Made by a program: the position numbers and the translations under genes. A stretch of DNA of 64,000 bases from Penicillus capitatus (lineage: Eukaryota > Plantae > Chlorophyta): assembly GCA_965649825.1 (NCBI GenBank), contig OZ287698.1:1441949-1505948 (forward strand), written 5' to 3'. Shown piece by piece: positions 2,291 through 38,457 of this stretch. Under the pieces are notes generated by a model, which did no database searches, had not been told where the DNA came from, and saw only the letters and a program-made list of their open reading frames with translations. Numbering within the stretch: the first letter of the stretch is position 1; each line of letters opens with the position of its first letter.

Positions 2291-3971
2291 CCCCCGAGAC
2301 AGGTAATAATAAAAAGGTTGGCGGTTTTACATGACTTTTGTTTGTTTAAACATATCAGCCATGCAGGGTGTCGTTTAGGGCCCTAGTAAGCAGTCCACCC
2401 TGGTAACTGCCAACTGCCAAAGACCGTCTTTTGAACTACAGAGCATGAATGTAATGAAATGTGGATCAGGAAACTCCTCGGGGGGCGCTGGGAAACCGTG
2501 CAAACGAGCGGATGGGTAATACCATGTAGTCTAACGTGGCGAACGCGGTCTTGGGGTCCTTCAGTTGCTCATAGAGAGTCTTCGACACGAAGACCTTCAA
2601 GTTCCTGCTGGGTGTCCATTCCGGGAGGGGCTGTCCGGCAGAGTCACGTTTGCGGCGATTCATTCGGTGTGGAGCTGCAAAGTGCTCTTCTTCGAGTTCG
2701 GGCGCAGGGATCTGCCAGCGAGAAGCATTCTGTTCGGCGATGGCTGCGATTGCGGCTTCTGGTTCTATGTCCAGATCGACATTGCTGATGACCACGGGGA
2801 CTTTGTCTTTGGTTGGCGAGAGGTACGAATTATTCACTGTGAATGTACCGATATCCGGCAGTTCTAGGTCCCAGGCATCTCCTGCACATTCCAGGCAGCG
2901 ATCCAGCGATTTCTCGAAGGACTCCCGCAGATCGGCACGGATTTGCACGTAGTAGCGGCCTCCGTGATCTGTACGGATGTCTTCCACGTGCTCCTTGAGG
3001 TTCCTGATCTTGAGCCTTCGCTCCAGACTGATTCCGAGCTGACGGAACGACGGGCGATCTTCCTTCAGTTTCACTGGGCACAGCTGGAAACTGCGCTCAT
3101 CGCATCGGATCTGGGCTTTAAGCTCCTGGGTTTTCTTCCTTAGTTCTCTGGCCTGGGCGTTCCGTTGCTGCTGTGCAGGGGTCTTTGTGGGCAAGGCCTT
3201 TCGGGCGGCATCCCGGTACGATCGAGGAACAGCGCTTCCGGATTCTGTCGCTGCTTGGTTTCTGTCCGCAGGAGCAGGGGGCGTGGAGTGAGCGGCGGTT
3301 GGTGTCCAATCCGTGATGCTATGGTAGAACAGCATGCAAGTGTGTACCTCGTGCATCGTGGAAAGAGCCTCGGAGAGACGAGCGGCAAGCGGGTGTTCCT
3401 TGGGTACGAACGGCGAGGCGATCATCTCGATCTGCGCGATAGACGAGCGGATGTCATCGGAGAGTGCTCTGAGGAATTCGCTCGGCGGCACCGAGTGTCT
3501 TGAGCGACAGAGGGATGCCGTGTTTGATTCTTCCCCCTTGGGCAGGTCTGGTGCTTCCGGCGCCAGGAGAAGCTGGTTGCGCAGGTTCTCGAGTCTATTC
3601 GCTAGAACCAGCTGGGCTTCGTCTTTCTTTTTATGCGCCGACAGGTAGTCACGGATCTTCGAGATGAGCGTGACTGGGTCCACGGACGCAGCGATGTGCG
3701 TGGGGCAGGCTTGGAGGGCAGTGTTGACGAGGATGAGCTCCTTCTTGCTCATCGCTTCGAGAACCTCTGGGGACAGGCGCAGATCGCGCCTGTACCTGAC
3801 CGTGTTCGCAGCCTGCGCCACCGCCGTGCGCACCGGGTCGGGGGCGGTGTCAGGACCTCCGGTCTGCGAGCCTGAGGGCTGCATCGTTCGCGTTAGTGCG
3901 TGCGGGCACCGTCGTTCGGCAAGGGTTTTAAACGCGGCAGAACGAAAGTGTCGTACCCCCCGAGACAGGTA
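2291..3971 (-). mobile_element. Non-autonomous non-LTR retroelement (ORF1 only) bounded by a 15-bp direct repeat
   Basis: CCCCCGAGACAGGTA occurs at 2291-2305 and 3957-3971 (putative target-site duplication). The first ATG is 72 nt inside the 5' boundary. No reverse transcriptase ORF is present. Confidence 0.6.
2466..3884 (-). CDS. LINE ORF1/gag-like protein, ending before the expected zinc knuckles
   Basis: Intronless ORF (open from 4250; first ATG at 3884). It has a coiled coil, an SYRDAARK motif and a VPVVISNVDLDIEPE..HRMNRR..PSRNLKVFV segment resembling non-LTR ORF1, and stops where CCHC knuckles normally start. Confidence 0.6.
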   Translation of the reverse strand: MQPSGSQTGGPDTAPDPVRTAVAQAANTVRYRRDLRLSPEVLEAMSKKELILVNTALQACPTHIAASVDPVTLISKIRDYLSAHKKKDEAQLVLANRLENLRNQLLLAPEAPDLPKGEESNTASLCRSRHSVPPSEFLRALSDDIRSSIAQIEMIASPFVPKEHPLAARLSEALSTMHEVHTCMLFYHSITDWTPTAAHSTPPAPADRNQAATESGSAVPRSYRDAARKALPTKTPAQQQRNAQARELRKKTQELKAQIRCDERSFQLCPVKLKEDRPSFRQLGISLERRLKIRNLKEHVEDIRTDHGGRYYVQIRADLRESFEKSLDRCLECAGDAWDLELPDIGTFTVNNSYLSPTKDKVPVVISNVDLDIEPEAAIAAIAEQNASRWQIPAPELEEEHFAAPHRMNRRKRDSAGQPLPEWTPSRNLKVFVSKTLYEQLKDPKTAFATLDYMVLPIRSFARFPSAPRGVS

Positions 3972-4499
3972 TCGCCCTTGCTCTGATTCCCGTCGGGGCT
4001 CTTCCTCGTCGACTTCTGCGTCGGTGGGTCCGTCCTCCCCAGGGCTATGCAGTTGGTCCTCGACTTGGGTGGCGTCTTGTCGAGCGTCGGGATTTCCTCG
4101 TTCCGCTTGTCTGAAGAAGTCGAGCGCCGATAAGTAGGGTGTGTGCTGGTACAGTGGTGGGTAAGGAACAACGGCACGCGAGGGTACTAGCGCCTCGTCG
4201 TCAGCCAGGATGAGAGTTTCTTGCGCGTGTCTTACGCCGAAGGTACACAAAGCCCAAAACGCTTACAAGAACAAAAGCCTCAGAGTCTCCCCTTTTTGTC
4301 AATTTATCCAGTCTAAGCGATGTGACCCTCTGAACAGGTGAGTCATCCCTCGTCCGGGGCCAGAGAATGACGCCTCAGATGACTCAACTTGCACCCCCAA
4401 GACATGAACCCATCGGAAACGAGGCAGTCACATCATCACGCCAAATCTTGGCGACAACAGGCATCATGTCCAATCAGTTGAGTCAGTTAGCTCACAGGA

Positions 4500-5258: not shown

Positions 5259-7225
5259 CTAGGAGACTTCTTGAATGATCAATGGTTCTGCTTCGCACAG
5301 GGCAGCAGGCTGATAGGACAAGGACGAGGAAGGGCGATTTTCGCCCGTGCGATGCATACCATAGAAGAAGTAGATGCACGTCGATACGACTAAGCATGCA
5401 GCAAAACGAATATAAGCCTCTGGGCCAAGTGTCGTCAGTAGGTGTACACAACACAGCAATCCTAGACAGGAGATGAGAGGCTGCATGCTTAACGCAAATG
5501 TGGTTGGTCTAAAGATGACGGGCAGTGGTGTGAAGGACAGAACCACTGCAAAGTAACAACCTGAAAGTCACACACCGTCTCCCATATGCAGACAGTCAAT
5601 GCGGTACCGACCTATGAACAACAACCATGTCCACAGCGGCCAAGCTCTGTCGATAGAAAGGCCTTCGAAAACGCCAACGGTCACCATCAACACCAAGCGC
5701 AGAGCAATCCACCCATGGTGAACAGGTTGCACAGCATCCTCGCAACAGAAGTTGTTGGCCGACGCCACATACCTGAAATCCAGTCTGCCTTAGATTCAGG
5801 CAATAGAGAGACGGTCTGTCTACCTTCTCCAAATGGAAGACATACAGACGAGGGAGAAAACGAACAAGATGCCCATCGATGTGGTTGACGTGAGCTCGTG
5901 CAAATCCAAGAGCATCGCCATCGTTGCCGAGATAGCACCCGTCAAGACGGTGGCATACAGTGGCGTGGATGTATATCCATTCACGTTTGCCTAAACGCGC
6001 TCGGCCCTCCACCAAATGTGCAGAAAAGAACAACGCACCAAGATTTTTGGCAGGAACCCTTCTCTGGCCAGAACCATAATCATGCGACACGGTACACACA
6101 TGGCGCCAAGGAGAGAGGTAATGATGCCACACATGGCGCCAAAAGAGACAATCCGACCAGCCCAACCCCATCCAACGGTTTCGAATCCTGTCGAGAATGC
6201 AGCCATGGCATCGATCTCTTTGTATCTGCAGTAGCCATCTCCATTGCCCGACGATGGAATTTTCGAAGGTACTCACGAGACCATGCCCACAAGGGCGGTT
6301 GCCATTAGCACGTAGAGAAAGGTGCAGATTGTCAAAGAGGTCAAAATGCTTAATGGCAGATCTCTCGAGGGATTCTTCGCGTCTTCTGCCACCGTCGCTA
6401 ACGCATCAAAGCCGATAAAGGAAAAGAACACCAGAGAAGCTCCCCGAAAAACACTGGAGCTTCCAAACTCGCTGGGAAAGATGGGAACATAATTGTCTAC
6501 ATCGATGTGTGGAATGGCGGCTCCGGCAAGAAAGAGAATGACGATTAGACTGAGTGTTGTGGCGATTCCATTGAAAGTAAAGGACGCGCGGACCCCATAG
6601 GCCAACAAAGCTGTCAAGAATATGATGGTAACCGCCGCTGCAATATCAAGCTCCATCCCTCCTGCACTGTTCGATGTAAAAACCAGCGCCTTTGTATCGA
6701 TGCCTGTGAGCGTCGCTACATAGCCTGCCACGCCTTTTGCGACGGCAGAGGCCATCGTGGAATAGCTTACTAGTATACAACTTGCCGCTAGCCTAAAATG
6801 GCAGGCGGTTGAGAAGTCTACCGTCTGGAAGTCATACCAAGAAGTGGCTTCCCCAAAGACGAGATCTATGTAGTTGTAGGCCGCGCCGGAGACGGGAATG
6901 TCTGCGGCAAATTCCGAGTAGACAAGGGCGCAAAACATCGCCGCAATGCCGGCCACCGCGTAAGAGAGAATGATGGCAGGACCCGTCTGCTCGTGAGCCA
7001 CTTGGCCCGTGACGACGTAGACTCCCGCGCCGAGCATCGTCCCCACGCCGAGCAAGACCTAAACAGATCAGATTCTTCCGTAACGCGAAGGGGGGCGCTT
7101 ACGAGGTCAAGAAAACTCAAAACGCGTTCAAGCTTTCCATTGGCCGGTGCCTTGCCAACCAGTTCTTCGATGGTCGTGCATCGGAAAGCTCTTCCCCGGA
7201 ATTTCGACCAGACGCTCATAGACAT
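5259..7225 (-). CDS. CAT: Cationic amino acid transporter (APC family), copy 2, complete
   Basis: MSMSVWSKFRGRAFR..|VLLGVGTMLGAGVYVVTG..FFSFIGFDALATVAEDAKNPSRDLP..C-terminal TM region. Six GT-AG introns; the first five are at the same positions as in copy 1. Confidence 0.93.
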
Positions 7226-7241
7226 CGAAAATGATGCGCGA

Positions 7242-10103
7242 CTACATGTGCTTCTTTTTCCGTCTCTTTGGCAAACATCTGTACAGGGCAATACAAACGC
7301 AGACCAATAAGCAACCGCCAACGATTTCGTCCCCGATGCCCCAGATATAACGCCCCTGTCCACTGCACTTGAGTGGCTCTGTGCCACTCTCGATTCTCAT
7401 ACAGGCCGCCAAAAAACGTTTGGCTGTGTCTTCGATGGTAGAAAGCCTCCATGTGGCCTTTTCGAAATCCATATTGCCTGCATCACTTAACGTACGCCTC
7501 CACATCTCCACGATCTCGCCGAAATCTTTTAACAGCGCAATCAACTGTGGAGCCTCGCTCTGGACAAACTCAAATGTCCGATCCGTCGATTCCACCGATT
7601 CCAATAAACGGATGCCGTGATTGACCATCTCGATGGAGAGATCGACCGAATCGAGAATGTACGTTCGATGCAATGCATCTTTCTGAGCCTGAGAGATCTT
7701 CCATCCGGGAGATGTCATAGAAAAAGGATTGGCACCGATGGACCACATCCAGTCATGCGCAACGGCTCGATGCTCGGGACTGTATCCCAGATGAGAAGGC
7801 AGAATACCACCAAGATACTGCAGCACAGCAGCCAATGTTGCCTTGAGCGGAGCTGCCAGCATCTGCCCAACAATACTGGGTCCACACGTGATGCCCGATG
7901 GATGCTGTCCTCGATACTGACTGTTCTGCACCACGATGACCATGTCTTCCAAGGCTCTGGCAACGTAGTGTCGATCGATGAAGATCGGACGATCCCTGTC
8001 GAGGATCAGCACAAAAATCGGCACGTCTAATTGCGTCTGCTGCGTTGTCGCCGTTGTTTTCTTTTGAGGACCTGCGTCACCAAACAACTGCTTTGTTAAG
8101 AGCGATCGCAATTCGAGCGAATCGAAGTAGAGACGCTCTTCGCTCTGAAAACTCGTTTCCGTGTTCAGACTCTCCAGTGTCGACGATCGGAGCGATGCTG
8201 CTAGACTGGACGACAGGAACGGATCGTCCAAGATGTTCTGATGACGCACAACGAAATGAAATTCCTGCCGTTCCAGTTTCAATCCCATCAACTCCTTCTT
8301 CAGATTCTCCGTATCGAATGGCCTCCTCGCTTCCGTCGGGTCTCTCGGAGCATCTGTCAAGAGATAGATCCGAAACGTCACACTCTTGGCATAAGGTGTT
8401 GACACATCCATGTCCTCTGAGTTGTTGTGTTTCCATGTGAGCGTCGGTGGAATGAAGACATGACGCACGGCACGAGAGACCAAGGCCGAGGCGTGAGCCA
8501 AGAAGAGATCTTTCATGCGCCCCTCGTGTTCCATCTCTGCTACGTCGACGTCGTCGTCCATTCCGAACCATTCCAGGAAAAGTTCATCGCCGTCTCGGGC
8601 AACAAACACATTCTCGTTTCTGGAGAGCTCTGTCAAAGCGTCGTGGAGTCGCTGGCAGAAGACAGGTGGCCGAGTGGAATGCGCACAGTGTTCGGAATGA
8701 AAACGACTGAGCAGATCGATTTCGGCATCCCGCATGATGTCTTTGGGCACGTAGCCTTCCACTTTGTAAGCATGCAGGTTCTCCATGCGTTCATCTCTCT
8801 GCGTTTTCAATTTCTCCTTCAGACTCTCCGACTCTTTGTTTGCCTCCTTGGTCGGCGGTTTCTTCAGGAAATAGTCTTCGATAGAAGGCAGCGTGGATAG
8901 GGTCTTCACACCATCGCCGCCAACAAGCGGTCCCCAGTCAACTGGTTTGGCGGCCAAATCGATCAAGATCCATCGTCGATGCCCTGCCCACATGTCAAGA
9001 GCACAGCCCTCTTCAGGTTCAAGCACGCGGAGTCCGCCCGCCCCAGATATCGTCGATCGATGATTGGCGTTTTTCGACAGCAGACTCAGAATCTCTGTCA
9101 GTGGCGCATCTCCATGCATTCCTTTCATCAGAACAACGTCTCTGAGAACTTTGAGATCCGGGTGCAGTCTTTGCAGTATCTTCATCCGCTGTTGGATCCA
9201 GGACTGGATTTGGTAGGACCACATGCCGCTCTCTTGCATCAAGGACTTCACGTCAAATTTCTCGTTGTGTCGTGCAGGATGCCATCGTCTGCTTACCAAA
9301 TCCTGTCCCGGTGGAATCGGCATGTGATTTGCGTAACTTCCTGCCAGCTTCTTCAGTTTCAGGACGGCGTCCGGCGAGATGGACAGGTAATCGATTTCTG
9401 CTTTGGAGAATCCGGCTCTGTAGACATACGCATCATCGAGATCTGGATTGATCAGCAGGATATTGTAACTCCACAGAATTCCCAATTCCGCCAGCATTCC
9501 GTCAATGACCCCTTCCAGTGATGCGACATCCACTTGATACTCCGATGTCTGGCCGCCAAAACTGTCGGGTCGTGAAAGCGCCTTCAGCATTTCTGCAAAT
9601 TGCAAAGAGAGCTCCGATGTCACCTCAATCGCATGGACAGATACATTGTAGTGCACGTAGCTGTGCAATGGCTTCGGTTTTCGAACAGATTCGAAATGCA
9701 GACACATGCCATCTTCTTTGCACGTCAGTTCACTCAGAGGCACTCGGGTATGCGGCAGAATGTGATCCAAAGTGGAGAACCATTCGTGCAATTCCTCCGG
9801 TCGGATCTGAACCTTTGTCCTTCCATCCCCATCGAACCCAATGAGCACCACATTGACTGGAATGGGCAGATGAATGCCTTCGACGGACGAGAGACCGAGA
9901 TATGCAGCGACATCTGATGACTCGGCGAATACATCCGGATCGTCGAATGTGCGTTTGTGCAACTCCCGAACGCGCGAGAGTTCGTCCGATTCCCATGACA
10001 GCGCTGAAGGTCCTGAGCCGAAAAGATGTGCCGAGTGAACGACATCGACGAAGAACGCGACCAGGGCGAAGAGACGAAGACGCGTCATTAAATTCCGTAC
10101 CAT
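7242..10103 (-). CDS. Conserved uncharacterised membrane-anchored protein, similar to Arabidopsis At5g58100 (953 aa)
   Basis: Intronless ORF with an N-terminal signal peptide, IPVNVVLIGFDGDG..RPEELHEWFSTLDHILPHTRVP (recalled match to the plant family), and a C-terminal TM followed by a basic tail. Alternative start at 10088. Confidence 0.8.
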   Translation of the reverse strand: MVRNLMTRLRLFALVAFFVDVVHSAHLFGSGPSALSWESDELSRVRELHKRTFDDPDVFAESSDVAAYLGLSSVEGIHLPIPVNVVLIGFDGDGRTKVQIRPEELHEWFSTLDHILPHTRVPLSELTCKEDGMCLHFESVRKPKPLHSYVHYNVSVHAIEVTSELSLQFAEMLKALSRPDSFGGQTSEYQVDVASLEGVIDGMLAELGILWSYNILLINPDLDDAYVYRAGFSKAEIDYLSISPDAVLKLKKLAGSYANHMPIPPGQDLVSRRWHPARHNEKFDVKSLMQESGMWSYQIQSWIQQRMKILQRLHPDLKVLRDVVLMKGMHGDAPLTEILSLLSKNANHRSTISGAGGLRVLEPEEGCALDMWAGHRRWILIDLAAKPVDWGPLVGGDGVKTLSTLPSIEDYFLKKPPTKEANKESESLKEKLKTQRDERMENLHAYKVEGYVPKDIMRDAEIDLLSRFHSEHCAHSTRPPVFCQRLHDALTELSRNENVFVARDGDELFLEWFGMDDDVDVAEMEHEGRMKDLFLAHASALVSRAVRHVFIPPTLTWKHNNSEDMDVSTPYAKSVTFRIYLLTDAPRDPTEARRPFDTENLKKELMGLKLERQEFHFVVRHQNILDDPFLSSSLAASLRSSTLESLNTETSFQSEERLYFDSLELRSLLTKQLFGDAGPQKKTTATTQQTQLDVPIFVLILDRDRPIFIDRHYVARALEDMVIVVQNSQYRGQHPSGITCGPSIVGQMLAAPLKATLAAVLQYLGGILPSHLGYSPEHRAVAHDWMWSIGANPFSMTSPGWKISQAQKDALHRTYILDSVDLSIEMVNHGIRLLESVESTDRTFEFVQSEAPQLIALLKDFGEIVEMWRRTLSDAGNMDFEKATWRLSTIEDTAKRFLAACMRIESGTEPLKCSGQGRYIWGIGDEIVGGCLLVCVCIALYRCLPKRRKKKHM

Positions 10104-10114
10104 TGAAAACAGTA

Positions 10115-10546
10115 TTACTTGCGCCGGCGTCTCATCGAAACGTAAGCGAGTGCGCCAATCAACGCTGTGGCGAGTTCAAAGCGCAGGAATGCAGGTGATG
10201 AGGTCGGTGGAGTGGTATTCGCTGCATGGACACCTGTATCGGCCTCCTTGGCTTCGCACCCTTCGGCTTTCAGTTCCCATTTGTCCCCGTCTGTCTCGTT
10301 TTCCGTCTTTGTGCAATTTTGCACGAGTCGGTAACCCGTTTGGCGACAGTACTCCTCTGTGGATTCATCTTCGGGACACTTGTCGCAAGGACCTGTTCAG
10401 AATGTGGCACGACGGAAGTCGAATCGCAGCTGTTGTTTACGAATAAGGTAACATGACGTTTCGGCGCTGTTCTCCGCGGCCGTCGCTTCGGCCAGGACGC
10501 AGAAGCTGAGCGCCAACAGTGATAGAAGAAGGAGATGATGATGCAT
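10115..10546 (-). CDS. JTB (jumping translocation breakpoint)-like small type I membrane protein
   Basis: Removing intron 10393-10440 gives signal peptide + CYLIRPCDKC..YCRQTGYRLVQNC..C..FLRFELATALIGALAYVSMRRRRK. This matches the JTB Cys / TGY / FE-TM-RR pattern. Confidence 0.65.
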
Positions 10547-11039
10547 TCTGTTCACAAGGCCTTCGGTGTTCGACATGAAATGTCGCATTATAGGACGTCT
10601 GCATACCAGTGGACATTGAAAATTACCTATTCAGTCTGCCCCATCACAAAGACGGTCTTGTCGAACCTCCCAGGTGAAGCGGCGAGCAAGAATGAGCGGC
10701 TGCGCGTAAAAGTCCCGTCGGCAGCGCCAACCACCCGCCACTCTAGCGGTCATGGCTGCATTGACGGGTACCTCCATTTCACCAAAAAGAGCTTTGTACT
10801 TTGTTTGTTCTCACTTATTTCTCGTTTTCTGCTACTCCCCGAACAACTCAATCATTCAAAGCTTCTTCTTTGTACCACATACAGGTTTATTTGTAACTTC
10901 CTCTCGATGGGAACGGGCGATGTGACCTCGCCCTAGGAGCTATTCCAGAAGAGAATACGAACGTATTGACCGCTCTGTCCCAGAATTGTTTGCCTCGTTG
11001 TCTTATGCATCGAACGCTTTGTGAATCTTAATTCCCACA

Positions 11040-14000
11040 ATGAACTCGTCGAAATCACAAAACTCTGAAGTGAAGGAGAGGTCGAGCGCGTCGTCGTCGA
11101 ATACGTTCTCTGTCTCTCTCGAGGAACTTAGAGAATTAAATCTCGTACGACGTTCTCTGTCCGAGGCAGCGGAATATATCTTCTTCGTTCGTAGGACAAG
11201 GAACTCAGTGCGATAAATCGAAAAGGAGGAGTTGCTGGCATCGCTGAAGCACTGCACGTAAACTTGTCGACGGGGCTGACCTCAGAAGAAAGTTCACAGT
11301 GGAGTATTGAGGCGCGTCACGAAGTGTTCGGCAGCAATGTGATGAAAGAAATATCCCCAAAAAATTTCTTCGCACTCGTTATGGAGCAATTAGAAGACCC
11401 AATTATCATACTGCTGATCCTGGCTGCCCTAGTACCTTACTGAATTAGGTGGGCTTCTGCGAGGAACTGCACTCTAGGCGAGTACGATACTTGGCGTCTC
11501 AATCAAGGAAGAACGGGAGGATGAAGGGTGGATTGATGGCGTGGCGATTTGGGTTGCCGTCTTTGTCGTCGCACTGGTCGGAGCCTTAAACGACTATCAA
11601 AAGGATCAGCAGTTTCGAAAGCTGAACGCCCAGAAAGAGGTCTTTGATGTCACCGTTATTCGAGATGGCACGGAATCGCTGGTCAAAAACTCGGATTTGG
11701 TGGTGGGCGATGTCCTCGTCCTCAACACTGGCGATCGGGTGACAGCTGACGGATTGCTTTTCCACAACAATGACCTCATCATCGACGAGGCGAGTCTGAC
11801 AGGAGAAAGCGAGCCTTTAAAAAAACGGGTAGACGGAGATCCCTTCTGTCGATCCGGAACACAGGTCACAGAGGGGAGTGGCCGTGTCTTGATTATTGCG
11901 GTTGGAGAACACAGCGAATGGGGACAAACATTAGCGCTGGTGACGGGGGATACAGAGGAGACGCCACTTCAGGAGAAGTTGGGAGATCTTGCTGCCGCCA
12001 TCGGCAAACTTGGTTTCTTTGTGGCAATTTGCTCCTTTGTGGTCTTGATGATTAGGTCCATCCACTCCTGTCTCTAACAGAGATACTGAATGGGCTGCGT
12101 TGTCAGATGGTGTGTGCAGGAGAAGGGTTTCCCGTTGGACAAGATCAACGATGATGGCCCTGTTCAGTTCTTTCTCTTTGCTGTTACTATCGTGGTCGTT
12201 GCGGTACCTGAGGGACTTCCACTGGCAGTGACCATTTCACTTGCGTACTCTATGCGCAAGATGATGAAGGATAATAACTTCGTGAGAGTGCTAGCAGCGT
12301 GCGAAACAATGGGCGGTTCGGATGATGATTTCCGGCAGATCTCCATTGAGTGCTTTCCGTAAATGTCTTTTAGGTGCAACGACGATCTGTTCGGATAAAA
12401 CGGGGACGCTTACGGAGAACCTTATGACTGTGGTGGGAGGTTGGTTTCAGGGGAAGACGCACTTAGTGACACCTCAGAGAAACCATTTGGCCGAGCACGT
12501 GCGACATCACATCGTTCTGAACGCGGCACTCAACTCTAAAGTCTGTGACCTGTCTATCAATTACGCATGCGATATCCCTACTGGCACTCAGGCTTTCCTT
12601 ATCGAAGAAGAGACCGGAAGAGTCACGTTTGTTGGGAATCGAACAGAATGTGCTCTGTTGATGATGATTCGAGAGTGGGATGAAAAGTATCAACAAATCC
12701 GGCAGCAGTACGAGAACAACATGATAAAGGTAGCTGACCTTCATGAGTGCCTTGCACCTGCCCGCGAGTCATGTCTCCTCAGGTTTACGGATTCAGTTCA
12801 GCAAAAAAGATGGCCAGCGTCATTGTCAGGGATAACGATGTCATGAAAATACTTAATAAGGTTCGGCACATAATCGGCACTTCTCTGTCTTTTTGCATGG
12901 ATGCATATGCGCAGGGCGCTGCGGAAATGGTCTTGGAACTGTGCACACACTACGTCAATGAAGATGGAGACATCCAAGAGATCACGCCAGAGTACAAGCA
13001 AGAAACAATGGAAAAGATTCAAAGTAGGCACAGCTTTGCATCAGAGTGTTCCTCATTTTGGTTCAAGCAATGGCATCTCGTGGACTGAGAACACTAGCGT
13101 TGGCCTATCAGGAATTGGAGGAGGGACGCTATAGCTTTGGCCCGGACGGAGAAGCTTTGGACGAACCCATTGATGGACTGTTTGGTTTCAAAGAAGCTCC
13201 CGAACACCATCTTATCCTCACGGCCATCGTTGGAATCAAGGCATGTACCATGGCAGCCGTATTCGTCTCAAGCATGTCTGGCGTCGCAGGATCCAGTCAG
13301 AAAAGAAGTGCCAGGTGCTGTGGACCAGTGCAAGAAGGCAGGCATTATGGTACGCATGGTGACGGGAGATAACATTCACACAGCGAAGCACATTGCACGA
13401 GAATGCGGCATCTACTCCAATGGTATTGCCTTGGAGGGACCACAGTTTCGTAGAATGGCAGAAACCAATAAAGAGGAATTGCTTCGAGACTTGCCTCGTC
13501 TGCAGGCAGGGCGCACTCCCTCTTCCATTCTTAATCTCCTCCTCATGTATGGTGGATGTTTAGGTGCTGGCAAGGTCAAGCCCAACAGACAAGCACACCC
13601 TCGTCAGCTTGTTACGTGGCCAGGGAGAAGTTGTGGCTGTAACTGGCGATGGCACTAACGACGCCCCTGCCTTGAAGGAATCTGATGTGGGATTGGCTAT
13701 GGGCATTGCCGGCACTGAGGTGGCGAAAGAAGCAGCAGATATCGTCATTCTGGATGACAACTTCTCCTCGATCGTCAAGGCTGTCCTGTGGGGGCGCTCT
13801 GTGTTCAACAACATCCGGAAATTTCTGCAATTTCAGCTGACGGTGAACGTTGTTGCTCTCATTGTGGCCTTCATTGCGGCGGTTGTGGGCGGCGAGACGC
13901 CACTCAATGTGTTGCAACTGCTCTGGGTCAATCTTATCATGGACACTCTGGCAGCGCTTGCCTTGGCAACAGAAAACCCAACCCCGGATCTGTTAGATCA

Positions 14001-14881
14001 CCAACCCTATGGCAGGAACGAACCGTTGATTAGTCCGACCATGTGGAAGCACATTCTGCTACAGTCGCTCTATCAGCTCCTGTTCATCTTCGTCATTCTC
14101 TATGCATTCCCTAATATGATTGATCGGTCTGTCTCTCAACTGTCTTTCTGAGTAAGACATCTGATGTGGGCGATAGATACAAGATTCCAAAGGAGGAAGA
14201 GTGGTACTACGATCACATCTGTTTTCCCAACGAGGACGGGCGTGATGCGCTCGAAGACTGTTCACAACTGTTCAGATGCAACCCCGATGAAGAGAAATGT
14301 TATCCATTGTCAGATGATTCGGATGTCGATCAGGGGCGCCTGGACTCTTTGAAAGATGACTACGAAGAGGAACACGATGACAGAGAAATGCGAAAAAACT
14401 CAATCATTTTCAACATCTTCATCTTCATGCAGGTCGGCCGATGATAAGCGGCATGAGTTCTCTTTTACGCTTTTGTGTGGACTAGGTCTTTAACGAGTTG
14501 AATGCGCGGAAGATCAATAATGAGTACAACATTTTTCACCAGATTTTCGACAGTCCGATCTTTATTTCTATATTCGTTGGAATTGCTGGCCTTCAAGTCT
14601 CTTCCAGAAGCAGTTGATTCGATTTGAGTGACTTTGTGTGACCTCCAGGTGATTATAATGATGACGCCAATGCGAGATTTCTTCAAAGTTGACAAACTCA
14701 CGAACATGGAATGGTTGCTGTCGATGATCATTGGTTTCGGCGTCGTGCCCTACAGTTGGCTCATTCGATTTATTCTAAGGTTCACTTTTTCTCACTCTTT
14801 CTTCTTGACGATATGGATTATAGATCCCGCGAGAAAGCCACAGACATCTCAATCCAAGCTCCGGCTGTTGATGGAGTTTGA
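11040..14881 (+). CDS. ACA: P2B-type Ca2+-transporting ATPase (ACA/PMCA-like)
   Basis: Motifs [43 protein letters not shown] and [11 protein letters not shown]. Fourteen short introns, two of them GC-AG. Confidence 0.96.
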
Positions 14882-16066
14882 TTCAGCCTTTCCACATGAC
14901 GTAGTAGGGTATTGTCGACGTTGTTAGGGCTGGTTCACTTTATGCTTCATGGACAGAACACCACAGCATTTAGCCATCAAAGTTCTTTCGAATTTAGAGT
15001 TTGCAAAACTCTATCGCCGATGCAACTCATGACAGTCATGCTTTGGGTTCTTACGTGTCGAAGAATTTGAATCGTTAAATCCGTCCTTCTACGTTGCATT
15101 ATATAATGATTCGTTTCTCTGCGTCCTACTCAATGAATGGTTCTCGGGTTGTTGGGCGTTCGACAGACGGCAAGCTCATAACGCCGCGCGTGGCCGTGAG
15201 TTCTTTGACATTCGGAGCATTTGTGGCATTTCATTTTCGTGCTCTTTATTAAAAAGTAAAACATAAAGGTGTAGCATCATAGTCAATAAAGCCGAACGGT
15301 GCATATGCATAAATGCGCCAAACGTGAAATGGCGGCCGTTTCTGAGTGGATACCGTTGCTAATCATCTCGTCCTTCCGTCTGACCCCCCCCCTTAATTTC
15401 TTTCCTCTGTACTCGTAATAAACTCAGGTACCTGCGAACCACTCAATGCATCTGCATATGTGCTCAGAATACGAGGTACCATTCAGAGCTGCGAAACGAA
15501 GCGATTGTCTACAATCTTCCATGTTAGACTTGTTGTGCGGTCCTCTTAGCTTATCGTTTTCGCGGAATGAAAACTCCATCCGACATCTCAGGGTCGATGC
15601 ACTAAACAGATGGTAAAGGAACGAGTGTGTGTGGGAAGCTATTGTCCGGAGGTGTCGTTCGTGAATGCTGAAGCTGTCTTGATGAATACTTAGTGACCTT
15701 TAAGGCGATCTGTTCGAACGTCGAGTTCACTGCGCGCACGGATCGATGGTTTGGCGAGCGACGTGGCTCGGCGGCTGTGCACTGTGTTCTGACTGATGTG
15801 ACGTCTGCCTGGAGGTCAAGTCTCTTCAGTCACCGTTCGACAACAGCAAAAGGGAAGGCAACCAGTCTCTCTTCGAGACAACGCTTTCTTCGAACCTTCG
15901 CGTCTGCGGCTCTTCGACCTGCACTTCATCAACCATCTATTGTTTTCCGTTTTATCGACCTTCGCCGATTTATGAGAGAGTTGTGTCGTTCTAAGTCGAG
16001 ATGATCTCATTAAACCTTCTCTCGCTGCAACACGGACACGTCTGTTTGCTATCTGTCCTAGATAAG

Positions 16067-24119: not shown

Positions 24120-24480
24120 GGTCAAAAATACAAGCCATAAGATTGCACGCCACCAGAACAGTCCGCGCAACTCACGGTCCGTAGCGGAATACTTATCGCG
24201 ACGACGCGAACTTCCGCTTCGCTTTCGCCGTGTAAGGTGACTCACCTAATGTGACTCTGACATCAGAGATCGACGCGATCCGCGGAACACGACAGGACGT
24301 TGAGTGCAGCTCTAACTGGCAATAGTCGCACGTCAGCTCGGCCTCATCCGTCGCGACATCGCCGCAAGCGCAAGGATAGCACGGTTATTGTACGACTACG
24401 ATGACTAATGTCCTTACAAGTCGCGGTTGTAAGATGAGCGCATTACAGTCGAATCATAAGAAGATGTCCAAGAGGACCAC
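24120..24480 (+). repeat. Contiguous copy of the ~360-bp dispersed repeat
   Basis: Joins segments B (4500-4600) and A (1668-1983) in one piece. Contains internal inverted repeats CTCTGA-CA-TCAGAG and CTTACAA-N7-TTGTAAG. Confidence 0.88.
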
Positions 24481-25118
24481 CGCCATGTCGCTCTTACTCG
24501 TTTTCACCGCCATTCCGAATCCAGAGTCGGATATGCGACAGAGGCCATGGTGATTGCTGTGCCTAATAGATCAGCAAAGTCATCTCCCGCTCTGACATCA
24601 AGGTCTATGACCGACATTGTTTCGCCTTTATGATGAAGAGAAGAGTTCAGTTAGAACGATGCATCGGTTAGACCGACTTTTGTGGTCAATTGCAATGTAT
24701 GTGTTATGATAGCGCTTTCTGTTGTTATTTCATGACCTCGTTTTCAGTAATGTAGCTGTTATCTTTTTCATCATGAAATACTCTCCCTCGTCTCGAAGAG
24801 CTTTCGAATGTTGTCGCTTACTTTGCATTTCTAGCATCCATTCATTCTTGCAGTATCTTCTCAAAACGATGCACGGCAGAGAATGCACAGCGTACGATTG
24901 CAGCTGCTAGAGCACTGCAGATTTGCCCTTAACAAGTGTTGCCTTCGTTACATCACTTGTACGCACAAAAGTTCTCGCTGGTTTACACAGCCGATGGTGT
25001 GTATTGCCGATTGCAAAAAAGTACTTAAGAACACAAAAACTAGATACGGAATCATCCCTTCACTCACAATACCCGCCACATGTGAACTCAGAATCTGCAG
25101 AGTTGTGGAAACAGGAGT

Positions 25119-26373
25119 CTAGACATCGACAAGTGCGACATTGAAGCCCACAACGATACTTCCCGAGATCGTCACTCCTTTCTTCGGCTTCAGATCCGGA
25201 TCATTAGAAGGTCCCAGTTCCAAAGTGAGAGTAAAGTTCTCCTCTCCTTTCTGACAAACACCACCCATTGCCACCAAGGCACAACCTTCAGACAAAGAGA
25301 GATCGGCGATCACATGTCAGAATGAAAATCTCGTTACCCAAAAAATCGTCTGGAGAATTCGTGTCATGATCCCAGACATTGAACTCGATGACATCGTTGC
25401 TGGACTCGTTAGATTCGCCCAATTCGTACTTTGACATGTTCCATTTTGGCTCCAAACTTTTCATGATGACCTCCGAGACACAGCGGCGTCCTTTGTACTT
25501 TATCTCTACGAAGCAATCCGATGTTCGAGGTCCAAAATAGGGACGATCTGAAGCGGCCAAGTTCGTTCCTTCAACAGCCCATGTGTAAACTCTATATCTC
25601 TTTGCCAGAACAGCCGGCTCCAAAATGATCTGATCTAGCGACATGGTGTACACCACTTCCTTCACGGTACGCCCAGATGCCGTTTCCCCAAGGGCAGTAA
25701 ATTTCCACCAGGACCCCACACGCGTGAACACGCCCAAGATAGCAGCACTCGTATCAAAACTACGTGCCTTAAAGCACAGGAGATCGCGGGATTTTTTGTC
25801 CTCGTCATCCCAAGACAGTTTCATCATCATATCTGTCACATCACTCAATGTCTTGCCCTTTGAATAGACCGTAGCTACCACCAACAAGTGATAGACACTC
25901 GGCGGGACATTGTCAAAATCCACCTAGACACACACGAGGCATCGAAATGGTAGGGGAATCTATCCACAGCAGCACATACCAGCATCTCTTCATTGATATC
26001 CGTTCCTTCGAGGACCGTTCCATTGCGGTCATCGTTCAGATGCGTCGCCGAGACGTAGTGGCTTTTCTTCTTGTCCCACCACAAGACGTCCACGCATTTC
26101 ATGTCGACATTGTAGATAGCCAGAGACACGTCTATGTCGATGCCGTCTGCTTTCCAACCGCATCCAACCTTTCCGGTCTTGACACGCCCGTCGAGGAGAT
26201 ACGTATCGTTGGATTGCATTTCAACACAGCTCTCTAAGCTTCCTGCATTTTTCGGCAAATCAGGTTGCAAATGCACTGCGCACAAGAAAACGGATGAGAC
26301 GAATTTGTCTGTCGCTTAGGCACAGCGTACCCTTTGGTACCTCTTGTCCGTTTGCTTTCTCGGTTGTCGCCAT
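25119..26373 (-). CDS. TerD-like domain + C2 domain protein, paralog 1
   Basis: Three introns. GCGWKADGIDIDVSLAIY..DVLWWD..HLNDDRNG..EEML|VDFDNVPPSVYHLLVVATVYS..WWKFTALG is TerD-like. It is followed by a C2 domain (EGTNLAASD..SDCFV..WDHDTNSPDDFLG). Confidence 0.8.
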
Positions 26374-26458
26374 TGACGCCGCCGTCGATAAACGTGGAGA
26401 TCCAAAAATCGTTAGGTACTAATAAACAGAACAAACGGACCGATTCGACGTTCGCGTC

Positions 26459-27215
26459 ATGTTCAGTTTCTTTCCTTTCAGTTGTTGTTCACTGCTATCT
26501 GCCTTTCCTTTTGGAAACCAACAGACGCCTTATGCTATAGCTCGCCGAGAACGCTTAGCGAACAAAAACACAGGTGCCCTCTCGAGACAGCACGGTGGTT
26601 TTTGTATGAACATTGCCGCGGGCTGTCTGTCACAGTCTTAATAAAGGGGGTAAGGTACTTTCTACCCAACAAACCCAGAGGACATGGCGGTCACCGTATG
26701 AAGTCCGTTCCAATTGCTTTGCGAGCTCCGGAAAAGCCAAATGAAGGCGGCGAGAAAACCGTACTCATCTCTCCATTGGAAGGAACAAATCTGATGCCTC
26801 TTGATCGCCATACATTTGCTCGACCCCTCTCGGACCCCTACATCAAGTTTTTCTTTAAAGACAAAATGGATATGACGGAAGTGCAAGAGAGGACACTGAA
26901 TCCTGTCTTCGAGACAGGGAGGATGAATCTGGGCAAACTGGATCCCAATGACACACACGTTATCGAAATCCAGTACTGGGATTATGACATAGTGCTGTCC
27001 GATGAGTTAGGCGGCGTTGCTCGATTTTCAGTTGCCGGCCTCTTGGCAGCAACGAAGGGACGTTCTGGTCCGCTCTTTGCACCTGTCACTTCATTATGCG
27101 CGAAAAGGCTTGTTATTTAGGTTCAGTATGGGTCAAGCTGCAGCCAAGCGACAGCCAGCTTAGAAGGAAGAAGAAGGTCACTGGACACATCCGCATCGGG
27201 ATCAATGTGAAATGA
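26459..27215 (+). CDS. Single C2-domain protein A
   Basis: Same two-intron structure as B-D. EGTNLMPLD..SDPYIK..WDYDIVLSDELG..RRKKKVTGHIRIGINVK. The only in-frame ATG is at 26459. Confidence 0.8.
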
Positions 27216-27510
27216 GCCGATACACAAGTAGAAGATCTGCTAGATCTAGCACATGTGCAGAATAGCGTTCAGCAGCGTCGTTTGTGGTTTGTTTGTGCAA
27301 TTATCTGAGGCTTATTGAGCACGTAGTTATGACAGTCGAATGAGCACAGTGCTTTGTTAAATGAGTTCGATTTGAACGACAGCAGATGCGACGACGTGAT
27401 GTGACGTAAACTTCTCTTCTGCGGCACTATCCTTCGTCCTTTGCCTTTGCCATCTGTATTTCCATCTCGAAGCATCCGGAACGCCTCGTGGCTTATTGCG
27501 CCTAGAAGAC

Positions 27511-28162
27511 ATGACGAGTCAAACTACAGGTGCTCTCTCGTGACAGCAAGGGTGTTCTGTATAAATGCCTCGGTGGTCTGCCACAGTGAAATTCGAAGGG
27601 ACGGAGTACCAATTACCCACCAAGCCAAAAGAACATGTGAGCCCTGAGATGACGACCGTCCCAATTGATTTGCCAATCCCGGAGACGCCAAACAACGGCG
27701 ATGCGAAAACGATGTACATTTCTGCACTGGCTGGGAGAGAGCTCACACCTCTGGATCGTCATGGACTCGCACGGCCTACCTCGGATCCCTACATCAAGAT
27801 TTTCTTCAAGGAGGATGTAGGGATGACAGAAGTGCAAGAGAAGACACTGAATCCGACCTTTGAGACGGGAAGGTTGGATTTGGGCTTGCTGGACCCCAAC
27901 GACACACAGGTTATCGAAATCCAATACTGGGACTATGACCGAGTAACAAACGATGATTTTGGCGGCGCTGCTCGCATCTCTATTGCTGGTCTACTGGCAG
28001 CAACGAAAGGGCATTCAGGTGTTGTTTTCACATCCGTCACATCATTTGTGTCATGTACTGCTTGTAGGTCAAGTGTGGGTTAAGCTGCATCCAAGCGACG
28101 ATCAGCTCAGGAGGAGAAAGAAGATTACCGGTGACATTCTCATCGGGGTCAATGTGAAATGA
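27511..28162 (+). CDS. Single C2-domain protein B
   Basis: MTSQTT|VKFEG..LTPLD..SDPYIK..WDYDRVTNDDFG|..RRRKKITGDILIGVNVK. Confidence 0.88.
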
Positions 28163-28558
28163 GCTATCAAGCAGAAGATCATTATTAGAATCACATGTTA
28201 TGCAAAACTTAATACAGAAACGACGTTTGGGGTATGTTTGTTTATCCACCCGAGATTCAGGACACGTTGTGGGTTCAAATGAACGCATAGAAACAATGCA
28301 TCATTGTTGACGACTGACTCGAATAGTTTTGAATCTGACGCACGATCCTGGATATTTTGCGTCCGCCTTCCATGGCAGCATCGTCGATGAAACCAGACAG
28401 AAAACAGTGTTGAGTACAAAAGGTGGGTTAGATGTGACGTGACGTCAGCGCATCTTCTGTTTGTTGGCTTCCTTATTTAGTCTCCTTCGCCGTTACCGTC
28501 TGCAAATTCATTTTGAGATTTTCCAACCCATCGTGGTTCCTTCCTCCTAAAACAATCG

Positions 28559-29210
28559 ATGAGTAAAAACACAGGTACTCCTCCCGCTCGTGGCAGCACC
28601 TTTCTTGCATCAATGCTTCTATGGTTTCCCACAGTTGTGGTCGAAGGGATGGAGTACTATTTACCCATCAAGCCCCGAAAGCACGCGAGTCCTTCGACAA
28701 AGACCGTCCCAATTGATTTGCTAGTTCCGGAGACGCCAAACGACGGCGTTCCGAAGAACGTACTGATGTCTGCTCTGGCTGGGAAAGATCTCATCCCTCT
28801 CGATCGTCATGGACCCGCACGGCCGACATCGGATCCCTACATCAAACTGTTCTTTAAGGAAGAGGTGGTGATTACAGAAGTCCAGGAGAAGACAGTGGAG
28901 CCGCTTTTTGAAACGGGGAGGATGGATTTGGGCTTGCTGGACCCCAACGACACACAGGTTATCGAAATCCAATACTGGGACTATGACCGTGTAACGAACG
29001 ATGATTTTGGCGGCGCTGCTCGCATCTCTATTGCTGGTCTACTGGCAGCAACAAAAGGGCATTCAGGTCTTGTCTTCACATCCGTCACATCATTTGTGTC
29101 ATGTACTGCTTGCAGGTCAAGTGTGGGTCAAGCTGCATCCAAGCGACCATCAGCTCCATTGGAAGAAGAAAATCACCGGAGAGATTCTCATCGGGATCAA
29201 TGTGAAATGA
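28559..29210 (+). CDS. Single C2-domain protein C
   Basis: MSKNT|VVVEG..LIPLD..SDPYIK..WDYDRVTNDDFG|..WKKKITGEILIGINVK. Confidence 0.88.
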
Positions 29211-29649
29211 GCTGTTGCGTAACACAAAACGCCGCACAGTTTATGTACGATATGGAAATGGCAACCACATTTCTGGTCTACTTGCTCATTCATCAGAAAT
29301 TCAGGAAGTACAGCAGCAAAAGCGGACAATCAAGAAGCACAATGTGTCGTACATGAACTCAGCCTGAGTGGCTGTGGATGTGGATGCGACGCTCGATCTT
29401 GGCTGTGTTGGTCCTCCATTCGCTTTCTTGTCCTTGTGTAACACTATCCATCATTCGTGGAATCAGATTCAAAGAACCGTTACGCAGCACGCATGACAGT
29501 TGACGCTTCATGATCGGCAGATAAATGCTGCTACCGTAATTCTTCTTTCGTTCGTTTGTTAGTTTCCATCGTCGCTTCGCGGTTTACTCCTCTGCCTTTT
29601 CAAACCGCAACCAACGAACGCTTCTTGGCCATTTTTTCGTGAATCTGCA

Positions 29650-30303
29650 ATGGGTCAGAAGCGTACAGGTGACCCTTCTTTTCTTCGGACCATCATTTTT
29701 CGCTGAAACGCATGTATGCGCTGTAGTCATTGTAGGAGACCAACAATACTATCTGCCCGTGAAGTCCAAAGAACACCGTCGTCCGTCGACGAAGAACGTT
29801 CCAATTGAACTCCTCACTCCCGCAACGCCAAATGGCGGCCACATGAAAACCGTGGTTATTTCCATACTGAGCGGGAGAAATCTTTCGCCGATTGATTTCC
29901 ATATATTCCATCGCAACTCCTTGGACCCTTACGTCAAAGTCTTCTTCAGAGATAACACGTGTCGGACGGAAACGCGTAAGAGAGACGTCAATCCGACTTT
30001 CGAGTCGGGAAGAATGAATCTGGGTCAGTTAGATCCCAACAACACGCACGTGATCGAAATTCAGGTCTGGGATCACGACCTATTAACGAGAGACGATTTC
30101 GCCGGCGCCGCCAAGATTTCGATCGCCGGTTTGCTAGCTAAGACCCATGGACATTCGGGTCATGTTCTCCCACCCGTCACATCATTTGTCTCACGTGCTT
30201 CTCTGTAGGTCAAGTCTGGGTCAAACTTCATCCAAGTGATAGCCAACGTAAGAAAAGAAAAATGATCACGGGAGAAATCCTCGTCGGTGTTCAAGTTCAG
30301 TAA
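29650..30303 (+). CDS. Single C2-domain protein D (MGQKRT N-terminus)
   Basis: MGQKRT|VIVG..LSPID..LDPYVK..WDHDLLTRDDFAG|..RKKRKMITGEILVGVQVQ. Confidence 0.88.
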
Positions 30304-30565
30304 CTTGTCATTTCGCACAATATCTATCTCTACTGGCACCAGCCAGATTTCGTTAATGTTGCACTTGAATCGAACCTTGCTGTATGATAGTGTCGTCGTC
30401 ATGCAGTGTCGGAATAGTCGTTGCAGAAATGATTTGTCCATTAGGAACAATGCATTTGTAAAACAACGATTCAAAAATGAAACGTTTGGCGCAACGTCCG
30501 TCGGTTGTTCACTTCGATGTCTGCTTCGGCGTCTTCCTTCGTCTTCCCCAACAAGCCTAGTGATC

Positions 30566-31725
30566 ATGCTGACCCTACCACCGATGAAAGTGCGTGTACA
30601 ACTATCGTTGAACAGACCGCCAGCATTGCGTACTGTAGTCGAAATCCAGTTCGTCCCGGATTTCCTCCTAAAGAACAAGGCGGTCGAATGCGTTGCCGTT
30701 CAATCCGGAGATTCGGCTGCGTTAGACCCTCGTCTCGAATCCATGGCGCTGAATTTTGGATGGACGTTCAAAGATGACGAAGCAAGATTTGACGTGGATT
30801 CTTCTCTGGCTCTCTTTCGGAAAGATTTCACCGCCGTCGATTTTGTCTGGTGGGATCACCGTGCATCCAGATGCGGCGCTGTACACTTCTTGTCTCATGA
30901 CAACAAGGAAGGCACAGGCAGTGGAACAAAAGAGAGCATCAACGTGAAACTCAACAAGATCCCAGATGCTGTTCATTACTTAGTCGTTGTGGTGAGCGTC
31001 TACTCAAAGGACCACGACATCGAAGACATTCGAGACATTTCTCTATCCGTCGAGAATCCTTCCAATGAACGCCTCGTCGATTACAAGGTCGTGTATGGTG
31101 CATTCTGGGAATCTGTCTTTGATGTGACGTGCAGGTGAAAGTGAGAGGAACTGGAAGAAGTGTATTGCTGGGATGTTTTGTGCGTAAAGCCGAGGCATGG
31201 ACGTTTCGGGCGCTGTCCGAGTGTGTGTTCTCGCGAACGATTCTGGAGCTGCTGCACGAACCAACAAATCTGCAAGCAGTACGTGAGATCCAAGCGGCTC
31301 CCCGTGTGCGCCGCCGCCTCGTTATACAGCCCACCGAGGGGAAGAATCTGACGCCTATGGACTTCACGCTTTTCAAGAAGAGATCGGATCCTTATCTCAA
31401 AATCTTTGTCGACGATCGCGTCGTCGTTTCGGAGATCGCGTTCGCGACACTCAATCCGAAATTCATTTGTCAGCCCATCGATCTCGGCGAAGTCTCGTCC
31501 ACCTCAGCCAAGGTCATCGAGATTCAGTGCTGGGACTACGACAAATTTACGAAACACGATATCATGGGAGTGCACAAATTCTGCCTCGGAGGACTGGTGG
31601 CCAAAATGAATGCCGGTGAGAATGCTGTCTGGCTGAAGCTCTTTCCATCGGCCGAGAACATTAAAGACAAAAAGAAGATCACGGGAGACATTCTGTTCAA
31701 AGTCCTGGTCGAAGAATTCCAGTAG
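30566..31725 (+). CDS. TerD-like domain + C2 domain protein, paralog 2
   Basis: Two introns. NFGWTFKD..FDVDSSLALF..DFVWWD..HDNKEGTGSGTKESINVKLNKIPDAVHYLVVVVSVYS..AWTFRAL is TerD-like, followed by C2 (EGKNLTPMD..SDPYLK..WDYDKFTKHDIMG). The start codon is uncertain. Confidence 0.82.
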
Positions 31726-31831
31726 CCGATGGATGTCATTCATACCACTTTATCTCTCTACTCCATCAGTCACATCACTTATTGATTTTTGATATTGGAA
31801 GTTTCTAATCCATGTGACTTCGAATAGATGC

Positions 31832-32402: not shown

Positions 32403-32415
32403 CAACAACTTAAAT

Positions 32416-32457
32416 GAGTTGAGAAAAGTTCGAGGCGAGTTGAGAAAAGTTTGAGGC
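32416..32457 (+). repeat. 21-bp tandem duplication
   Basis: GAGTTGAGAAAAGTTCGAGGC followed by GAGTTGAGAAAAGTTTGAGGC. Confidence 0.85.
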
Positions 32458-38405: not shown

Positions 38406-38457
38406 CGCGCGTGTCGAAGACCGTATCCAAAACGCAGAAAATTAAATTAAGATGCGT

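Follow-up and report, generated by a model that had tools for sequence, protein, structure and literature searches.

A JTB-like, KNS3-like and cationic amino-acid transporter gene cluster with very short spacers in a green alga

Positions 5259-10546 of the stretch of Penicillus capitatus DNA analysed here (assembly GCA_965649825.1, contig OZ287698.1; 64,000 nucleotides (nt), or 64 kb, hereafter the window) carry three genes on the minus strand that all but touch: a JTB-like gene, a KNS3/At5g58100-like gene and CAT2, which encodes a cationic amino-acid transporter. An earlier note had read them as one transcription unit with three open reading frames (ORFs). The locus is best explained as three intact nuclear genes, separate from one another, in a bryopsidalean-type green alga with a compact genome. 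Since there is no room for a terminator and a promoter between the genes, transcripts crossing the gene junctions are likely. For the proteins we favour nested or overlapping messenger RNAs (mRNAs) that begin at internal sites and are each read as one cistron, a reading to which we give about an even chance.

The three genes and their products

The features of the cluster are listed in the order in which the minus strand is read.

10547-11042, strand not assigned: divergent intergenic region of 496 nt, between the JTB-like ATG at 10546 (minus) and the ATG of a PMCA-type Ca-ATPase at about 11043 (plus)
10115-10546, minus: JTB-like gene, exon 1 10546-10441, exon 2 10392-10115
10089-10114, minus: spacer 1, 26 nt, from the JTB-like TAA to the conserved KNS3-like Met
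7242-10088, minus: KNS3/At5g58100-like gene (DUF7906), intronless, 948 amino acids (aa), or 953 aa from the ATG at 10103
7226-7241, minus: spacer 2, 16 nt, tcgcgcatcattttcg, from the KNS3-like TAG to the CAT2 ATG
5259-7225, minus: CAT2, APC-family cationic amino-acid transporter, seven exons, 553 aa
4780-5258, minus: non-coding tail 3′ of CAT2, resembling a 3′ untranslated region (3′UTR), about 480 nt, the only such stretch in the cluster

Relatives of the locus were taken from the contigs bearing the five closest KNS3-like proteins. One of these, L001, encodes a KNS3-like protein 88% identical to that of the window and carries the same three genes in the same order.

The JTB-like gene (start ATG 10546, stop TAA 10117-10115) has a single 48-nt GT..AG intron (10440-10393) that contains an in-frame TGA. 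In spacer 1 the TAA is followed by 11 nt, tactgttttca, and then by an in-frame ATG at 10103, with the next in-frame ATG at 10088; the AG dinucleotide is absent from this spacer in the window. The second Met, at 10088, is most likely the true KNS3-like start, because the first ATG of L001 is out of frame and only the sequence from MTRLRL... onwards is conserved. The KNS3-like ORF so defined is 2,847 nt long and ends with a TAG at 7244-7242. Spacer 2 contains neither ATG nor AG and leaves CAT2 out of frame with the KNS3-like ORF. CAT2 runs from an ATG at 7225 to a TAG at 5261-5259 and is interrupted by six introns of 44-66 nt (7102-7059, 6837-6793, 6276-6226, 6038-5991, 5823-5773 and 5611-5546). 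Re-reading and translating the minus strand reproduced base for base the spacers given in the earlier note (11 nt, or 26 nt to the second Met, and 16 nt), and the starts and stops of all three ORFs, now fixed by homology, are those that it had assigned. The middle ORF is intronless, as claimed, but its description as Met-rich was overstated: 27 of its 948 residues are Met (2.8%).

Sizeable non-coding DNA lies at the outer flanks of the cluster only, which gives it one "front" and one "back". The divergent intergenic region (10547-11042) is the sole such DNA 5′ of the cluster, and its identity to L001 is 0.55, with many gaps. The tail behind CAT2 has an identity to L001 of 0.82-0.84, against an average of about 0.71 for introns. 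Because its mismatches show no periodicity of three (21/20/15) and its indels are not multiples of 3, we regard it as non-coding and 3′UTR-like. The leader of the JTB-like gene (10547-10600 minus; about 5490-5545 in L001) carries an upstream ATG at 10588, ATGCGACATTT, that is kept in L001; it is in frame with the JTB-like gene in the window and starts a 12-codon upstream ORF in L001.

The three gene identities proposed earlier hold, the first by way of its orthologue on a second relative, L002, and all three products are indeed secretory or membrane proteins. The JTB-like product (127 aa) has a signal peptide, a Cys-rich ectodomain, a C-terminal transmembrane (TM) segment and an RRRRK tail. 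Against Pfam JTB (PF05439, cut-off 22.1 bits) it scores 13.3 bits (E = 0.089), below the cut-off, and the L001 protein scores 8.2; the L002 orthologue reaches 32.7 bits over model positions 16-98 of 110, and the window and L002 genes match each other by tblastn with E = 1.8e-10. The window protein would count as a JTB member by transitivity only, through L002. The L002 JTB intron (about 5686-5732) is apparently GC..AG (GCGAGT...CAAAG), where the window and L001 have GT..AG at the same position.

The KNS3-like protein scores 55 bits against Pfam DUF7906 (PF25483, threshold 27 bits) and is 28% identical over 93% of its length to a plant homologue, its sole named relative outside the algae. It has an N-terminal hydrophobic leader or signal peptide, a C-terminal TM segment and, read directly from the sequence, a ...CIALYRCLPKRRKKKHM end that closes in the di-lysine tail KKKHM (7242-7270 minus). 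The family score, signal peptide, C-terminal TM segment and di-lysine tail expected of the KNS3/At5g58100 family are thus all present. At5g58100 is the Arabidopsis protein KNS3/SPOT1/IEF, a type I membrane protein that cycles between the endoplasmic reticulum (ER) and the Golgi; its C-terminal KxKxx tail is a functional Golgi-to-ER signal (PMC11629988). Among relatives, Caulerpa (KKKPF) and L002 (KGKKLD) retain such a tail, which a third contig, L003 (KTRRQ), does not have. A search for solved-structure homologues of the KNS3-like and JTB proteins found none.

CAT2 matches PF13520 (130 bits) and PF00324 (93.7 bits), with AA_permease_C on the last exon, and is 47% identical to the CAT of Caulerpa and 34-37% identical to plant CATs. 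Its N-terminus, MSMSVWSKF..., aligns from the first residues with CAT1 (a paralogue in the window), with the Caulerpa CAT and with three cDNA-like contigs described below, so that the start that had been proposed from CAT1 is now backed by all of these. The CAT2 exons are 0.89-0.94 identical to those of L001, and the introns 0.51-0.88. CAT1 itself starts near 1470 (1-1470 minus) and runs off the start of the window; unlike CAT2, it is preceded by about 1 kb of ordinary upstream sequence. A third tandem CAT copy lies beyond the window (L004, 21310-22600), and a CAT-like fragment at 39808-40314 (plus) is possibly a pseudogene.

Gene order in relatives and other tight junctions

The closest named relatives of the locus are proteins of Caulerpa lentillifera (48% identity for the KNS3-like protein and 47% for CAT2); the next CAT matches come from Monoraphidium and land plants. 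The GC content of the window, about 50%, is near the 52.4% reported for the Ostreobium genome, whose average gene density is, in contrast, far below that of the window.

The junctions stay short in the relatives. In L001 spacer 2 is also 16 nt, with 15 of the 16 bases identical, while spacer 1 measures 30 nt there, 21 nt in L002 and 32 nt in L003. The KNS3-like proteins of L002 and L003 are only 57-61% identical to that of the window and to each other. The window, L001, L002 and L003 all have a JTB gene directly 5′ of the KNS3-like gene. The KNS3-like gene is followed by a CAT gene in the window, in L001 and, across a scaffold gap, in L003; L002 and L005 lack this adjacency. On L005, which is Caulerpa-like (68.5% identical to Caulerpa), neither a JTB nor a CAT gene was found within 10 kb of the KNS3-like gene. 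The KNS3-like and CAT gene models of Caulerpa lentillifera bear the distant numbers g42 and g7477, which suggests that they are not adjacent. The JTB to KNS3-like abutment would therefore be old within the clade, being seen in three lineages, and the KNS3-like to CAT abutment less constant, in two. Co-linearity in other species, one of the marks by which green-algal polycistronic loci are recognised, is found here.

Such tight packing is not unique to the cluster, and recurs in the window between unrelated genes. At least three more same-strand junctions are of this kind.

58926-58939, plus: 14 nt, MatE stop (58923-58925) to TAPT1/DUF747 ATG 58940, with further in-frame Mets at 58970 and 58979
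55450-55494, minus: 45 nt, LRR-protein stop (55497-55495) to HPAT ATG 55449
38406-38457, minus: 52 nt, PfkB-family kinase stop (38460-38458) to RPA1-like ATG 38405

HPAT denotes a hydroxyproline O-arabinosyltransferase-like protein with its own signal anchor. The first exons of the RPA1-like gene are RPA70N-like as judged by eye, Pfam giving no match, and its 3′ part matches Rep_fac-A_C. A zf-CW gene (stop 57250) precedes MatE (ATG 57369 or 57537) on the plus strand at a distance of 118-286 nt, and zf-CW, MatE and TAPT1 would form a second candidate triple.

The upstream ORFs of the MatE-TAPT1, LRR-HPAT and PfkB-RPA1 pairs are long and ATG-rich. ATG is absent from all three spacers, as it is from spacer 2. 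AG is absent from three of the five tight spacers of the window, namely spacer 1, spacer 2 and the PfkB-RPA1 spacer. The remaining distances, whether same-strand or strand-switch, are about 0.3-1 kb, so that same-strand spacing looks bimodal rather than uniformly squeezed. At least five of about nine definable same-strand junctions measure 52 nt or less, for which a rough binomial P is 4e-4 if spacing is exponential with a mean of 600 nt, both the mean and the count of nine being our own estimates. This census covers Pfam-anchored genes, a home-made codon-bias scan (about 0.15-0.2 bit per codon) being too weak for a full map; by rough count there are about 30 genes in the 64 kb.

Because the same packing joins unrelated genes, the shared secretory destination of the three products is weak evidence for an operon. 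The position of a KNS3-type cargo receptor beside a polytopic transporter is suggestive but, given the unrelated partners elsewhere, may be coincidence.

Transcription across the junctions and translation of the downstream genes

We propose that RNA polymerase II runs over the junctions, such that transcripts of the upstream genes would reach into or through the downstream genes. These transcripts would probably end in the single conserved tail 3′ of CAT2 and would then be structurally multi-ORF RNAs. Each downstream protein would nevertheless be made from its own shorter mRNA, with a 5′ end predicted to lie a few to a few tens of bases before its ATG, and its core promoter elements would be embedded in the 3′ part of the preceding coding sequence. 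The evidence that favours such nested mRNAs can be summarised as (i) the packing recurs behind long, ATG-rich and unrelated genes, where monocistronic translation fits better than a special trick for each pair; (ii) ATGs are tolerated in the spacers of relatives; (iii) short leaders occur in the clade.

ATG content bears directly on how ribosomes could reach the downstream ORFs. Before the KNS3-like ORF, 6 ATGs are observed against 5.7 expected in the window, 7 against 6.5 in L001 and 6 against 5.7 in L002, and the KNS3-like ORF, which precedes CAT2, holds 64 ATG triplets in all frames against 45.7 expected. The ratio of observed to expected ATGs upstream of the downstream ORFs is therefore 1.05-1.4. 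Since ATGs are not depleted before either ORF, leaky scanning does not fit, and the earlier note was right to consider it a poor explanation. In L001 and L003 the JTB to KNS3-like spacer carries out-of-frame ATGs, from which ORFs of 47-132 aa begin. Ribosomes scanning from upstream, or resuming scanning after termination, would be trapped by these ATGs, which would be harmless if the mRNA starts 3′ of them.

Short leaders are seen in three intronless, cDNA-like CAT contigs (L006, L007 and L008) that are about 55% identical to CAT2 and come from two JGI samples, which we take to be coral metatranscriptomes. They are most likely spliced mRNAs, because they lack an intron position common to the window and L003. 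The contigs begin 13, 23 and 33 nt 5′ of the ATG, with no upstream ORF, and their leaders are homologous without being identical. Very short 5′ leaders thus occur in the clade, and no common spliced leader is present in the three contigs. Contigs, CAT1 and CAT2 are 56-66% identical in all pairs, and nothing in the window matches the 3′ flanks of the contigs. Searches with the KNS3-like, CAT2 and JTB proteins gave no spliced copies of the locus from this species; a JGI scan with the KNS3-like alignment gave no match, and a scan with a CAT relative added one more cDNA-like contig only.

Several observations weigh against internal start sites. The CAT contigs are as near to CAT1 as to CAT2 and have no direct bearing on the CAT2 junction. 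A promoter-like motif common to the junctions was looked for and none was found. Synonymous conservation at the 3′ end of the KNS3-like gene, where promoter elements would lie, is 0.86-0.88 against 0.80 overall, a difference that is not significant, the window and L001 being too close for such a comparison. Between deeply diverged lineages spacer 1 remains 21-32 nt long, a constancy that is in line with a coupling of stop and start as well. Moreover, inter-ORF gaps as short as these are a hallmark of true polycistronic mRNAs in other green algae (PMC7896298, PMC11892635), and in Chlamydomonas a 6-10-nt linker let a second ORF be translated behind a first ORF of as many as 654 codons (PMC5144980).

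Two candidate sequence signals were examined and rejected. The sequence CGCATCAT(T/A)TTCG lies directly 5′ of the CAT2 ATG (7226-7238 minus; also in L001) and again 4 nt 5′ of the JTB ATG in L002 (about 5585-5600), and CACATCATT lies within the LRR-HPAT spacer (55480-55490 minus). CATCATT occurs 25 times in the window against 14.5 expected, most of these copies falling within coding sequence or the repeated introns of paralogues, and CGCATCA is not enriched; we do not regard the sequence as a shared start-site motif. TGTAA, which serves as poly(A) signal in other green algae, does not occur on the sense strand between 10700 and 4597, where about 3.2 copies are expected (P about 0.04); the antisense strand has five. 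As a poly(A) marker it was discarded: it is inconsistent after other genes, absent from the 3′ ends of the CAT cDNAs and as frequent in total as expected. RNA structure at the three junctions, compared with shuffled sequence, showed nothing unusual (z = -1.0, +1.4 and -0.45), which also speaks for nested mRNAs.

A genuine tricistron, as the earlier note proposed, would be one capped and spliced mRNA from the JTB promoter, with the KNS3-like protein and CAT2 made by post-termination reinitiation. This reading suits genes set too close for a terminator or promoter, a cluster with just one conserved 3′ tail and an abutment kept between lineages only 57-61% identical. All starts lie within a few tens of bases of the preceding stop, a distance compatible with reinitiation, and spacer 2 and the three other tight window spacers named above are free of ATG. 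Polycistronic nuclear mRNAs are established in green algae (PMC7896298), and Chlamydomonas linkers of 6-10 nt gave expression of a second ORF after long, ATG-containing ORFs, for which the authors invoke reinitiation (PMC5144980). However, reinitiation after 127 and 948 codons is inefficient in known systems, the same Chlamydomonas constructs included (PMC5144980). Competing out-of-frame ATGs, confined to the L001 and L003 spacers, would capture ribosomes that resume scanning there. The same packing is found before housekeeping genes such as RPA1, which are unlikely to depend on a weak mechanism, and the KNS3-like to CAT adjacency is dispensable, being absent in L002 and L005. Six CAT2 introns after two stops would also trigger nonsense-mediated decay, if that pathway is conventional here. 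We consider the tricistron unlikely. As for the wider claim, that many nuclear genes are true polycistrons in which efficient termination-reinitiation follows ATG-rich ORFs of up to about 950 codons across spacers of 14-52 nt, we think it doubtful.

In a mixed arrangement, JTB and the KNS3-like gene would form a classical bicistron, and CAT2 would be a tandem-duplicated copy that landed behind it and has its own start site. The dimensions suit this (JTB 330-384 nt and spacer 21-32 nt, beside published medians of 291-357 nt for the first ORF and 40-183 nt between ORFs), and so does the wider conservation of the JTB to KNS3-like link, in three lineages. CAT genes are tandemly duplicated, the upstream region of CAT1 is ordinary (about 1 kb), and the mRNA-like contigs of CAT relatives carry short leaders of their own. 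The depletion of ATGs before the second ORF that such a bicistron calls for is nevertheless not seen in any of the three species (ratio about 1.05-1.08, published median about 0.48), out-of-frame ATGs occur in the spacers of L001 and L003, and the KNS3-like gene would be left without its own 3′ end. This arrangement seems to us rather improbable.

A polycistronic precursor resolved by spliced-leader trans-splicing or endonucleolytic processing might be expected from the resemblance of these tight same-strand clusters, set between larger strand-switch regions, to operon-bearing genomes, and from the AG that directly precedes the KNS3-like ATG in L002 and L003. An AG acceptor is, however, absent from spacer 1, spacer 2 and the PfkB-RPA1 spacer of the window; the leaders of the three CAT contigs differ, are genome-like and contain no shared sequence; and the Rfam matches include no spliced-leader RNA family. 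We know of no description of spliced-leader trans-splicing in green plants or algae, and regard this explanation as very improbable.

An artefact (a chimeric assembly, a fused gene with missed introns, read-through or a dead CAT2 copy) might be suspected because the window comes from a metagenome assembly, but it is largely refuted by the recurrence of the same junctions in L001, an independent assembly from another sample, and is hardly credible given that the spacer lengths (26, 30, 21 and 32 nt for spacer 1, 16 nt for spacer 2) do not keep to one frame, that each protein has its own conserved N- and C-terminus, and that the CAT2 exons are far more conserved than its introns. Gene fusion and stop-codon read-through in particular are rejected by the inconsistent frames and the independent termini.

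Other features, known systems and implications

Elsewhere in the window, an array of TerD/C2-domain paralogues occupies 25100-32750 on both strands. Within it the near-identical intron segment tcaCATCATTtgtgtcatgtactgcttg(t/c)ag occurs twice, at 28040 and 29088, and a further copy, at 30180, is more diverged. In L005 the KNS3-like gene has TerD and C2 genes as neighbours. Between CAT2 and CAT1 lies a 594-aa ORF (2466-4250 minus) without a Pfam match, and opposite-strand ORFs (1359-2283 plus) show a weak aspartyl-protease match (E = 0.0045); this region may be a mobile-element remnant. Three RNA genes were annotated.

24256-24377, minus: U4 spliceosomal RNA gene (48.5 bits)
43776-43848, plus: tRNA-Arg(TCG)
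44098-44171, minus: tRNA-Glu(CTC)

In microsporidia and nucleomorphs, transcription units overlap, promoters and 3′ ends lie inside neighbouring genes, and RNAs spanning several genes occur, of which only the 5′-proximal ORF is translated. The cluster resembles these genomes in that its gaps from stop to start are too short for separate UTRs. The window is, in contrast, less compact, with many introns, other intergenic regions of 0.5-1 kb and a tail of about 480 nt behind CAT2. With the spliced-leader operons of nematodes, tunicates and kinetoplastids it shares same-strand clusters of unrelated genes separated by short gaps, whereas a shared leader and a consistent splice acceptor in the spacers are lacking.

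The nuclear polycistrons of the green algae Chlamydomonas, Chromochloris and Auxenochlorella are rare, have small, ATG-poor first ORFs and are translated by leaky scanning (PMC7896298, PMC11892635). The cluster is like them in its chlorophyte host, its co-linear same-strand ORFs with short gaps, its small first ORF (JTB) and the conservation of this co-linearity; as in those loci, the ORFs lie in different frames, which excludes read-through. It is unlike them in ATG content, the observed to expected ratio of 1.05-1.4 standing against a median of about 0.48 before the second ORF of known algal bicistrons (PMC11892635), and in the ATGs present in some spacers. JTB, at 384 nt, fits the median first ORF of about 0.3 kb, whereas the second upstream ORF, the KNS3-like gene, is 2.85 kb long. 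Known loci make up, by our estimate, about 1% or less of genes (36-43 high-confidence loci beside 7,698-15,333 monocistronic genes), a frequency far below that in the window. They are, moreover, defined by a single mature mRNA, seen in long-read cDNA, that carries two or more ORFs and has no monocistronic counterpart, and the work on them does not extend to the Ulvophyceae. Our literature search found no report of nuclear polycistrons in Ulvophyceae or Bryopsidales (siphonous algae), and neither JTB nor CAT had a match in those supplements of the published algal polycistron lists that were searched, which are part of the whole.

The bicistrons with short linkers built in Chlamydomonas (Onishi and Pringle 2016, PMC5144980) likewise place a second ORF a short linker behind a long, ATG-containing first ORF. 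Those constructs are engineered and their second ORF is weakly expressed; the spacers here are natural, of 14-52 nt, and translation from a shared mRNA is a candidate reading. Taken against these systems, the cluster could represent a variant form of algal polycistrony, although an architecture of overlapping genes packed unusually tightly is more likely.

Should the RNAs prove truly polycistronic, a eukaryote would have to use a second mechanism at scale, for instance reinitiation. Reinitiation throughout the genome would amount to a novel way of expressing eukaryotic genes and to an operon-like organisation without trans-splicing in the green lineage, and a KNS3-type ER-exit cargo receptor would be co-expressed with a polytopic transporter that is possibly its cargo. 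If nested mRNAs, the reading we favour, prove correct, promoters would be routinely buried in coding sequence. The architecture matters for gene prediction, by which these genes are split or missed here, and for the choice of promoters in algal engineering.

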